A stretch of 64,000 nt of DNA from Ylistrum balloti (taxonomy: Eukaryota), in NCBI RefSeq assembly GCF_031769215.1, contig NW_026782525.1, positions 496,001 through 560,000 of the forward strand, read 5' to 3'. This document shows, piece by piece, positions 16,883 to 22,800 of the stretch; the first letter of the stretch is position 1; every line of letters begins with the position of its first letter. Position numbers and translations under genes: made by a program. The notes under the pieces were generated by a model that had not been told where the DNA came from, ran no database searches, and worked only from the letters and a program-made list of their open reading frames with translations.

Positions 16883-19800
16883 CTGAAACAGCCAATGTTC
16901 AGGTCAAGTTATCATGAAAACAATACCAGTAACATATACAAACACTTCTATGTAGAGACACCTATCTGAAACAAACACAATGAGGAATTACCAACTAAAT
17001 TAATCATTATTCTAATTATTGTAAAATAGCATCACTAAAATACTACCTCTGAGAGTCCATAGTCCTGCTCCAGAGGTCCCATGTCCCCAGCCCCTGCCTT
17101 CACCAGTGTCACATTCCCATGCAATTTCTTTGTGGGTTTGTACTGGTCAGATATCATCAGTCTCCGGTAAAAGGCCTCAGCTGCTATGTCTAGGTCAGCT
17201 GAACTCTTGAACAAGTCTAACTTTGATAATTTTTCCACAACAATTTTTAGACGTCCACTGAAGTCTGTTTGTTTCTCTATTTCTTGGGAAAGCTGAAATT
17301 TTTAGAATGAAATCAATATCAAACATGACAAAGTTGGCGAAATTTTGAAAAAAATTGTATACTGTTTACATTTCATCCAATCACAATCTGCAGATAATTC
17401 TAACAAGAGGATATGACATGCTTTTCACAGTAGTGACTGGAGTTGTAGCTGAATACTATTCATGAAGAGGAAATTCTTACCAGTCCAGACAAAGGTGACC
17501 TGTATTTTCCCCTTCTACACTAACACCTGGGTAGAATGGTCTCCTAAGGGAATTATCAATTTCTTACCCTGAACATGTGCAGGTCATTTATACTTTTACA
17601 ACTATGAGGTTTAATTGCTTAACTCTAGGGTTGAGACAAGGGTATTCCCCATCAACACTGACAACAAATGACAGAGTCAACACTGACCACCAAGGACAAA
17701 GTCAACACTGACAACCTGTGACAGAGTCAACACTGACAACCAAGGACAGAGTCAACACTGACCACCAATGACAGACTCAACACTGACAACCAAGGACAGA
17801 GTCAACACTGACCACCAATGACAGACTCAACAGTGACCACCAATGACAGAGTCAACACTGACAACCAAGGACAGAGTCAACACTGACCACCAATGACAGA
17901 CTCAACAGTGACCACCAATGACAGAGTCAACACTGACAACCAAGGACAGAGTCAACACTGACCACCAATGACAGTCAACAGTGACAACCTGTGACAGAGT
18001 CAACACTGACAACCAAGGACAGAGTCAACACTGACCACCAATGACAGACTCAACAGTGACCACCAATGACAGAGTCAACACTGACAACCAAGGACAGAGT
18101 CAACACTGACCACCAATGACAGTCAACAGTGACAACCAAGGACAGAGTCAACACTGACAACCTGTGACAGAGTCAACACTGACCATCATTATTCCACAAA
18201 ATGATTCTATGTCAAAATTTATAAGATTCTTTCCATCTTTCACTTAGATGAGAACATTTTCTATCTAATGGTAATCACCTAGATTACATGACAAATTGCA
18301 CCTAAAATCCAAAATGTTCTCTTGGGGAAAGTCATGAAGGTTTTTCTCAATCATATATTCTGGAGAGAGCCGATATTATGTTATGGGTTAGATGTTATAT
18401 TGCTCCATTGTAGAGTGTATAGAATGGAGAAGAAAACCGTTTACAGGTACAATGATACAGGTATAATGCATCTATCAGGAAGGACTTTGTGTACAAATTC
18501 TGAAGTAAAGCATATATCTTAATACAGGTTTGTTCCTCTGTCATAAAATCTACATCAACCTAAACCCTTTATGTAATGATGAGATCTGTCCTTACCTGGC
18601 TTACACCTTCAGTGGTAAACTGTTGAACAAATGCACAGAGAACAGCAACCTCAGCCTGCTCCTGGCTCTGGATTGCCATCTTGTCTCGATAGGTTCCAAT
18701 ATGGGATGACACAAACTTGTGGGACCCATCCAACAAACAGAGAGACTCAACTATATCGTCTCCAAGTTTCTCCAACTGCAGTGTTATCTCTATGGCAACG
18801 CTGGTCCCAAAGGAATAGCCACACAGGTTATAAGGAGGTTTGGGCTGGACAGACTGCATCACCTGTAATTATGCAATTATTAAAAAATGTTCCAAGTAAG
18901 ATATTCTCATCAAGGGTTTACAATGACACAAACACTCACATAAATAATGGGCATGTAAAATTTGGGTATGATATTTGTTGGAAAAATTTGCATAATTTTC
19001 ATATATGTAAAAGTTGTAAAATTTATATTATAGTTTACCTGTATGTAGAAGTTTTATAGTTAAGATGATAGTTTACCTGTATGTAGAAGTTTTATAGTTA
19101 AGATGATAGTTTACCTGTATGTAGAAGTTTTATAGTTAAGATGATAGTTTACCTGTATGTAGAAGTTTTACAATTTAGATGATATTTTACCTGTATGTAG
19201 AAGTTTTATAGTTAAGATGATAGTTTACCTGTATGTAGAAGTTTTATAGTTAAGATGATAGTTTACCTGTATGTAGAAGTTTTATAGTTAAGATGATATT
19301 TTACCTGTATGTAGAAGTTTTACAATTTAGATGATATTTTACCTGTATGTAGAAGTTTTATAGTTTAGATGATATTTTACCTGTATGTAGAAGTTTTATA
19401 GTTAAGATGATAGTTTACCTGTATGTAGAAGATTTATAGTTAAGATGATAGTTTACCTGTATGTAGAAGTTTTATAGTTACGATGATAGTTTACCTGTAT
19501 GTAGAAGTTTTACAATTTAGATGATTGTTTACCTGTATGTAGAAGTTTTACAATTTTGATGATTGTTTACCTGTATGTAGAAGTTTTATAGTTAAGATGA
19601 TAGTTTACCTGTATGTAGAAGTTTTACAATTGAGATGATTGTTTACCTGTATGTAGAAGTTTTATAGTTAAGATGATAGTTTACCTGTATGTAGAAGTTT
19701 TATAGTTAAGATGATAGTTTACCTGTATGTAGAAGTTTTATAGTTAAGATGATTGTTTACCTGTATGTAGAAGTTTTACAATGTAGATGATTGTTTACCT

Positions 19801-22800
19801 GTATGTAGAAGTTTTACAATTTAGATGATTGTTTACCTGTATGTAGAAGTTTTATAGTTAAGATGATATTTTACCTGTATGTAGAAGTTTTACAATTTAG
19901 ATGATTGTTTACCTGTATGTAGAAGTTTTATAGTTAAGATGATATTTTACCTGTATGTAGAAGTTTTACAATTTAGATGATTGTTTACCTGTATGTAGAA
20001 GTTTTACAATTTAGATGATTGTTTACCTGTATGTAGAAGTTTTATAGTTAAGATGATATTTTACCTGTATGTAGAAGTTTTACAATTTAGATGATTGTTT
20101 ACCTGTATGTAGAAGTTTTACAATTTAGATGATTGTTTACCTGTATGTAGAAGTTTTATAGTTAAGATGATAGTTTACCTGTATGTAGAAGTTTTACAAT
20201 TTAGATGATTGTTTACCTGTATGTAGAAGTTTTACAATTTAGATGATTGTTTACCTGTATGTAGAAGTTTTATAGTTAAGATGATATTTTACCTGTATGT
20301 AGAAGTTTTACAATTTAGATGATTGTTTACCTGTATGTAGAAGTTTTACAATTTAGATGATTGTTTACCTGTATGTAGAAGTTTTATAGTTAAGATGATA
20401 TTTTACCTGTATGTAGAAGTTTTACAATTTAGATGATTGTTTACCTGTATGTAGAAGTTTTGCAATTTAGATGATTGTTTACCTGTATGTAGAAGTTTTA
20501 TAGTTAAGATGATAGTTTACCTGTATGTAGAAGTTTTATAGTTAAGATGATATTTTACCTGTATGTAGAAGCTAGCCATGTCAGGGATACTATGAAGAGG
20601 GACATCCTTGGAGCATTGAAGACCATAGACAGGACAGCTGAGTTGGGAGGCTAATTCCCTCATACATTTCACACTTCCTGTTCATGTACAGTAAAATGTA
20701 AAACAGTTCCATTTAAACATTATCCTCAATAGTTTCAATATTTCAATATGACATTTACATCTGAATATAAATCTAATTCCCAGCATGCAAATATTGCATA
20801 GCCAATATTTTCTGTAACACTGTTTATCAAAGCTGATTGACAAAGTCAAAATTTTTGTTATATGTCACAACCCAATGAAGAATATTCATAAAAAAGGCAA
20901 TTCATGGCGATAAATTTCGTTACAGTACTTCTGTTTTTCTTCATTCTATAAATTATCTTCGTAATAAAGAACCACAATAATTTTTCCTTACCTTCTAAAG
21001 GATGAACTATAAATAGCGGAGATTGACTATCATCTCCTACATTCAACCTCACTATGGTCTCCTGTGGCATAATCTGGTCCAAGTCATATCTTTCCAGGAT
21101 TTGTTCAGTGAAGGCCTGTTCTGCCTTTTTGTCCCCAGTGGACTGGCTTTCCAGGTTATCTGATATAACCTGAAGTTTAGATACACTGAGTTGTCTAATT
21201 TCACGCATGGGTAATGTTAGGTCAAAATCTCGTTCCAGTGTTTGCTTGACCTCAACTCCCATCAGAGAATCTAGACCAAGGTCACCAAGGCTGGCATTAG
21301 AATCCAGAGTACTGCGATCCTTTACTCCTGTAATGTTATGAAGCCAAATTTTGAGCTTGTTATTCAAAATTTTCAATAACTGCATCATTATAAAATTATC
21401 AGATACTTTTACAGAAGAGTTTAATCTATTACCATATCTATTCAAAGTAACCTTTACTTTTAATCAGTTTTGAATATAAACACAAACCTAGAATATTGCA
21501 AATTGCATCCACCAAGTTTTTCTTGGAACTTTCACCTTTCGACCTCTGGTTAACTTTTTCAGCAAGTACAAAGCTGGACATGACGGGATGAGGTTGGTTG
21601 AGGAAGTTGTCCAGTGTACAGAGACAGGAGGCTATGCGTTGTGGCAGGGTACCACCAATCACAGTGTCATTGGTTCCCATGGTATCCAACACCACCCCTA
21701 CATCTCCAATGGCTCCCCATTGTACTGCTAAGGCTGCAATTCCAACAGACATTACATCTTAATTCTTATAGTAATTGACCTAGGTTTCATGTATTTTCTG
21801 TAAATATGGTTAACATTAAATGACAATGGAATAAGTTTAACAGACTTCTTACAAATAAACCTGAGTCTGAAATCATAACTAATTAGCTTTCATCTTACCA
21901 TCATCATGGCTCAATAGTGTGAGCAGAAATATATCGTAATTACTTTCCAATAAAAAAATTACCGGGAAAGCCATCACGTGTCCTCTGCTCACAAATCCTC
22001 TCCATTACTGAGTTAGCAAATCCATAGTTAGTTTGCCCAGCATTGCCCCGCCCACAACTGACAGATGAGAACACAACAAACCAATCCAGGCTTTCCTTAC
22101 AGTGGTCTCTAGTCACCTTATCTAAATGCAAGGTGCCCTTAACTTTTGGTTGGCAGACAACATCAAAATCTCTCTGGCTCAAGTTTTCTAAAAAGCCATC
22201 TTTGAGCACCTGCAAACACATTTCACAATTTAAGATGAAGACTGGTTGTAATACATTGTACAGATTGCTTTCTTTACCTCAAAGTTGTTTCATTAATGGC
22301 CAATGGAATGTTGGTGGTTTTTTTATGTATATATGTAATTTATACAAGGAAAAATCAGCTAATTATTTGACAATCATGTTCTCTGATAACTTTTCATAAA
22401 ACATCTGAGCAATAACTTCACAAAGTGACTGGGTAGTACTTATTGTTCCTGAAATAAACCCAGGGGACCACCATACAAATTCTAACTTGGGGGAGGTTTT
22501 ATTACAACACAATGACACTTAATTCTACATATTTACTGGACATGGGCTGGATAAATAAGGCAGGTAGACTACACATTTGACATGATAAGTATAATACCCC
22601 TTGAACATTTCCTACCGAAGTCTTTCCACATCTATTTCTAAGTTTAGTTAAATTTTTGTCATATAGATATTACCATGGCTAAATGGAAGACTCCACCAAC
22701 TTCTCTGATATTACAAGATTCTTTAATGAGAGACTGTGCACTGTGTTCTGTAGTTACATCTTCATTCGACACAACAATCTGAATTCCCTTCTTTTTCCAC

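Follow-up and report, generated by a model that had tools for sequence, protein, structure and literature searches.

A minisatellite of 41 units repeats the exon 25 donor junction of a fatty acid synthase gene in Ylistrum balloti

We analyzed a 64,000-nt stretch of the Ylistrum balloti genome (NCBI RefSeq assembly GCF_031769215.1, contig NW_026782525.1, positions 496,001 to 560,000). This stretch is called the window below, and all coordinates are positions within it. Its minus strand carries a gene that by homology is an animal type I fatty acid synthase (FASN), and the boundary between coding exon 25 and intron 25 of this gene is repeated in a long tandem array. The array is a large further case of a known kind of repeat, represented by the mirages of amphioxus and the minisatellite of human F7, and the kind is common in this genome. 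We consider it likely that the array is a junction-spanning minisatellite whose first donor is used and whose pseudo-donors are silent, and that it is a tolerated by-product rather than a splicing device. Its structure, its position and its consequences for the reading frame are observed directly. The features at this junction are as follows.

20559 to 20677, minus strand: FASN coding exon 25, 119 nt, the start of the thioesterase region, with end codons F-Y-I-Q (tblastn with homologues P0054 and P0014, junction search, translation).
20553 to 20561, minus strand: authentic donor CAG|GTAAAA, the first copy of the repeated junction (P0014 alignment, position weight matrix).
19014 to 20571, minus strand: minisatellite of 41 units of 38 nt, holding the authentic donor and 40 pseudo-donors (sequence reading, Tandem Repeats Finder, site script, unit-variant analysis).
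19812 to 20571, minus strand: exon-proximal half, units 1-20, with a regular A-D-D higher-order pattern.
19014 to 19811, minus strand: distal half, units 21-41, heterogeneous.
18996 to 19013, minus strand: decayed 42nd core, distal to unit 41, with 14 of 18 bases kept and AG|GT lost (read from the sequence).
18863 to 18995, minus strand: unique 3' part of intron 25 with the real acceptor ATTACAG|G (sequence reading, junction search, acceptor score).
18596 to 18862, minus strand: the 267-nt FASN exon 26, whose thioesterase domain includes the serine motif GYSFG (positions 58-129 of the PF00975 profile, E=5e-11; tblastn).

A sequence-only reading of this stretch had described about 41 tandem copies of the exon 25 donor. 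A script search found exactly 41 CAG|GTAAA sites on the minus strand. The last exon-like bases of these sites lie at 20559-38k, with k running from 0 to 40, and no site deviates from this spacing. Tandem Repeats Finder calls the array at 19004-20571 with a period of 38, 41.3 copies, 92% matches and no indels. In each 38-nt unit, 13 bases derived from the exon are followed by GTAAA and then by a 20-nt spacer, and exon 25 shares exactly its final 13 bases with the unit, as had been proposed. The 18-nt core CTTCTACATACAGGTAAA is the same in 41 of 41 units, and variation is confined to nine columns of the spacer, which agrees with the earlier description of an invariant core and a varying spacer half. 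Among the spacers the main types are A (7 units), B (11 units) and D (12 units). Rare unit types occur in 1 of 20 units of the proximal half vs. 9 of 20 units of the distal half (Fisher p=0.008). The array has traits by which junction minisatellites are known: it is intronic and head-to-tail, its unit length falls in their range of about 10-160 bp, its terminal unit spans the boundary and includes exon bases, and the authentic splice site is reiterated (CAG|GTAAA in 41/41).

The strength of the splice sites was scored with position weight matrices made from FASN's own 27 donors and 27 acceptors, with array-located sites excluded and leave-one-out scoring. The authentic exon 25 donor scored 10.0 bits, above 18 of the 27 FASN donors. 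Donors of the units scored either 10.0 bits (GTAAAA, 10 units) or 6.5 bits (GTAAAC, 31 units), and the gene median is 8.6. The junction 20559>18862 is required by homology, as residues 2082 and 2081 of P0014 abut there without a gap (tblastn), and the first donor is thus probably the productive one. Local translation bore out what had been said of the alternative donors. Use of the next donor adds 38 nt, shifts the frame and creates a TGA at the new junction, while from donor 3 onward the reading frame runs into a TAA in unit 2. For every alternative donor a stop falls 13 codons past the end of exon 25. By this translation only the first donor would keep the FASN frame and length.

Similar arrays have been described at splice junctions of other animals. 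The variable number tandem repeat in intron 7 of human F7 has a 37-bp unit and its first element spans the boundary; the identical pseudo-sites are functional and only the most upstream site is used (PMC1557585). The exon 25 array resembles it in unit length (37 vs. 38 bp), in a first unit made of exon end plus donor, and in the identical pseudo-donors that follow. Unlike F7, which has 5-9 copies and 4 exon bases in the unit, the exon 25 array has 41 copies and 13 exon bases, and F7 splicing has been tested experimentally whereas we infer that of FASN. Further human junction minisatellites are found in IFI6 (6-16) intron 2, with 25 pseudo-sites, in CBS intron 13, in LMNB2 and in PDGF (PMC1557585), and in these, as in FASN, the donor is reiterated in the intron, 10-25 times in the human cases. 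The two pseudo-sites closest to the authentic donor are spliced as well in IFI6 and CBS; such use in FASN would give stopped transcripts. The amphioxus mirages are likewise tandem duplications of 5' and 3' boundaries, several per genome and unstable in length, and splicing is reported to be undisturbed by them. They differ in belonging to a cephalochordate rather than a bivalve mollusc, and the cited amphioxus examples, in globins, have few units (3-6). A literature search for junction minisatellites in molluscs found no paper describing them. The sequence-only reading had offered two possibilities, about 40 donors that act as decoys and are passed over by the spliceosome, or a self-regenerating ratchet. 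The former is favored, because donor 1 alone keeps frame and length and because F7, IFI6, CBS and amphioxus provide precedents.

We propose that the array arose from a 38-bp tandem duplication across the exon 25/intron 25 junction, which would have taken in the last 13 exon bases and the first 25 intron bases. Slippage or unequal exchange may then have expanded it to 41 copies, with growth and turnover probably located mainly at the exon-proximal end. The spliceosome would take the exon-adjacent first donor and the 40 downstream copies would remain silent. Any leak to pseudo-donors would yield transcripts that are out of frame or stopped within 13 codons, and these would be removed by nonsense-mediated decay.

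The host gene was traced with homologues found through a full-library search in which a 408-aa central exon was the query. With the full-length FASN homologues P0054 (2,513 aa) and P0014 (2,304 aa), tblastn gave 28 collinear coding exons on the minus strand, from 39772 to 16784, and the junctions were refined by GT/AG and reading frame. Pfam searches were made exon by exon, and the joined reading was translated locally. Single exons match PF02801 (ketoacyl-synthase C), PF00550 (PP-binding, ACP) and PF00975 (thioesterase); the enoyl reductase (ER) exon matches PF00107 (zinc-dehydrogenase) at 27.6 bits, which is under the family's curated cut-off of 31.8. The 28 exons, set against homologues of 2,304-2,513 aa together with the Pfam matches, follow the order KS-AT-DH-ER-KR-ACP-TE. 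Because the KS, ER, ACP and TE domains lie on separate exons and the 28 exons are collinear with the homologues, sequence evidence identifies the gene as animal type I fatty acid synthase. Exon 15, the 1,267-nt central exon, apparently ends in the GC donor CAG|GCAAGT (29057-29066, minus strand), which would make the following intron a GC-AG intron. The gene is flanked by a tektin-like gene (4400-8800, plus strand) and a LUC7-like gene (48300-55100, plus strand), and the RS-rich tail of the latter gives rise to coding tandem repeats at 54032-54126.

Two other junctions of FASN also carry arrays.

30780 to 31645, minus strand: exon 14 donor array, about 19 diverged copies, 42-49 nt long, of the exon 14 end plus AAG|GTAAGT, with the authentic donor at 31621.
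23960 to 25635, minus strand: exon 19 acceptor array, 33 copies of about 50 nt with TTATAG|GTGTTG, the authentic exon-adjacent copy being the last, at 23965.

Unit 2 of the exon 14 array contains the donor together with about 20 exon bases, and GGTAAG is retained in only 10 of about 19 units. The periods of this array are 49, 46 and 42, and about half of the copies lack GT. It appears from its sequence to be older than the exon 25 array and would show that pseudo-donors decay. The exon 19 array keeps an invariant block of 22-23 nt, made of 16 intron and 6 exon bases around the AG, and the 28 columns upstream of it vary. Use of its upstream acceptor copies would add 50n nt with stops, and in both sister arrays, too, the exon-adjacent copy is the productive one. 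Four more arrays in or near FASN have no contact with any junction. An array of 39-nt units was seen in intron 15 (28473-29014, minus strand), 48 nt downstream of the donor; its acceptor-like TTTTCTACAG|GTTT matches no FASN junction. Arrays of 60-nt and 73-nt units, at 40374-41099 and 39101-39597, lie upstream of FASN and inside its first coding intron, respectively, and make no junction contact.

The array was compared with other individuals through the contigs of four DNA runs (four individuals, two studies), which were set against exon 25 and the first 10-11 units. The exon-linked contig enters the repeat in 4 of 4 individuals. Compared with the window, this contig has eight differences in the first spacer and none in the cores of units 1 and 2. 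The authentic donor is GTAAAC in the four other individuals and GTAAAA in the window. Unit 3 contains one core variant (20490). Short contigs that match window units exactly occur at 2-6x single-copy depth, and the same strings occur 6-18 times in the window. In X1, one 1,848-nt contig spans exon 25, about three units and the unique intron tail. This indicates either a much shorter allele or a collapsed path. Short-read contigs size such arrays unreliably. Taken together, these contigs show the array to be real and suggest that it varies among individuals in spacer and copy number, as expected of a minisatellite.

The same kind of repeat was looked for in the genome of the window (648.5 Mb). 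In a random sample of 20 x 10 kb taken at round coordinates (L009-L028 of G000), Tandem Repeats Finder reported 39 minisatellite arrays that cover 34 kb, or 17% of the 200 kb; their units measure 17-144 bp, and the copy number reaches 105. A donor-like 7-mer was present in 2 of these 39 arrays vs. 1 in the reversed control, and the sample is too small to show any donor enrichment. Genome-wide, three CAGGTAA words spaced 8-38 nt apart occur 33,226 times, across many different unit families. The same search with control words of the same composition gave 5,201 (AATGGAC), 8,480 (ACTGAGA) and 4,491 (AGAGTCA), so that periodic CAGGTAA is 4-7 times commoner than the controls. One locus that matches the 38-mer array weakly (L008, G000:C75:1061389-1064702) has on its reverse strand about 59 copies of a 17-bp unit (about 1050-2140), and this array begins at an open frame that looks like an exon and ends in CATCAACAG|GTAAA. 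It appears to be another donor-seeded minisatellite at an unrelated locus. These counts suggest that donor-bearing minisatellites form a genome-wide class, yet a minority of all arrays. No high-identity copy of the 38-mer array was found elsewhere in its own genome, where the array matches only itself. Origin from a dispersed satellite or transposon was considered and rejected, as the other loci that match it, at 67-71%, hold unrelated arrays with nothing but the ACAGGTAAA word in common.

Three points weigh against the view that the exon 25 array is a tolerated by-product with silent pseudo-donors. The use of donor 1 is deduced from homology and reading frame. The three junction arrays among the seven in and around FASN give no evidence of a junction-specific mechanism. 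We modelled uniform seeding over about 9.9 kb of non-array intron and 54 junctions with 40-50-nt units, and about 15-25% of tolerated duplications would then span a junction. The observed 3/7 lies within this expectation (P about 0.07-0.24), and junction-specific seeding was rejected as a conclusion from FASN alone. Finally, 40 of 40 intact pseudo-donors with invariant cores are not obviously expected of a purely neutral array. The invariant block of the donor array is made of the exon bases and donor positions +1 to +5, with P about 0.001 for a fixed core and 0.018 when corrected for the longest run. The six singleton substitution events of this array are all outside the core (P about 0.02 under uniform mutation). 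For the acceptor array the corresponding probability of invariance is 1e-5 to 0.003. In both arrays the conserved part is the part that selection protects at the authentic junction.

Polar growth from a selected exon-adjacent master copy is the simplest account of the invariant cores, and it fits a proximal half that is homogeneous, a distal half that is not, and the decay of the terminal unit. Conversion that starts in the longest identical block would reinforce the invariance. Selection on every copy is an alternative to which we give little weight. It also seems improbable that the cores are non-neutral in the wider sense, either with each copy bound or used (by U1, U2AF, recursive or rescue splicing) or with array growth tied to the splice signal. 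Growth of the latter sort, if it occurs, would also explain the genome-wide excess of periodic CAGGTAA.

Other explanations of the array were weighed against the reading of a tolerated minisatellite. Each unit has the juxtaposed AG|GT of a recursive splice site, and splicing into an internal CAG would regenerate the donor, so that the array might be removed piecewise, or mis-splicing rescued, in a stepwise ratchet. The invariant core would suit such a use. The internal CAGs are also better acceptors than had been thought. The sequence-only reading had called their pyrimidine tract weak, which is not borne out by the standard of FASN itself: the internal CAGs score 4.1-6.2 bits, with 37 of 40 at 5.4-6.2, whereas the 27 true acceptors have a median of 6.3 and intron 25's own acceptor reaches 6.6. 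The scores of the internal CAGs lie at the 91st-97th percentile of 537 intronic decoy AGs, but about 5% of intronic AGs taken at random score as high. The branch-like TTAAC, which had been placed about 22 nt upstream of CAG in many units, was found in 20 of 40 units, its A lying 21 nt before the G of the AG. This spacing would fit a branch point, but the motif falls where the unit varies most, in columns 27-34, and it is missing from the 12 D-type units and others, which is not the pattern of a conserved branch point. Known recursive sites of Drosophila and vertebrates occur singly, are conserved and serve very long introns, tens of kilobases in length. By contrast, the FASN sites form a 41-fold array in an intron of 1,696 nt, of which 1,520 nt are the array's 40 extra units and about 176 nt would be left without it. 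A single unit is too short for an intron, and the exon 14 donor array lacks GT in about half of its copies. We therefore regard ratchet splicing as unlikely.

Selection could instead keep the pseudo-donors for a regulatory purpose, with the array acting as a platform or sink for the U1 small nuclear ribonucleoprotein or tuning FASN output through regulated unproductive splicing and nonsense-mediated decay. Invariance of the exon-derived bases and GTAAA beside a varying spacer, the absence of singleton substitutions from the core and the early stops from all alternative donors are in line with this. The same repeat type is, however, scattered across many unrelated genes and unit families, a pseudo-site core is altered at 20490 in other individuals, and the contig that crosses the array points to an allele with only about three units. 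Core invariance may also come from polar growth or from conversion, as discussed above, and we find a selected regulatory role quite doubtful. That the reference holds an inflated or mis-assembled version of a shorter repeat is very improbable. Short-read contigs cannot span the array and the one that crosses it has only about three units, but the internal variants are ordered (A-D-D blocks, singletons) and the passage from exon to unit recurs in every individual compared. Moreover, the depth of exact unit strings in the four other individuals is near the window counts for X1 and X3.

The exon 25 array amounts to a natural 41-way contest of donors with an identical core in an essential housekeeping gene, and the same gene holds a 33-way contest of identical acceptors. 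Both could be used to test how the exon-adjacent site is chosen, whether by 5'-to-3' scanning or first-come selection, by exon definition or by proximity of the acceptor. Arrays of this kind also carry a warning for annotation, as they present gene predictors with dozens of perfect false splice sites.

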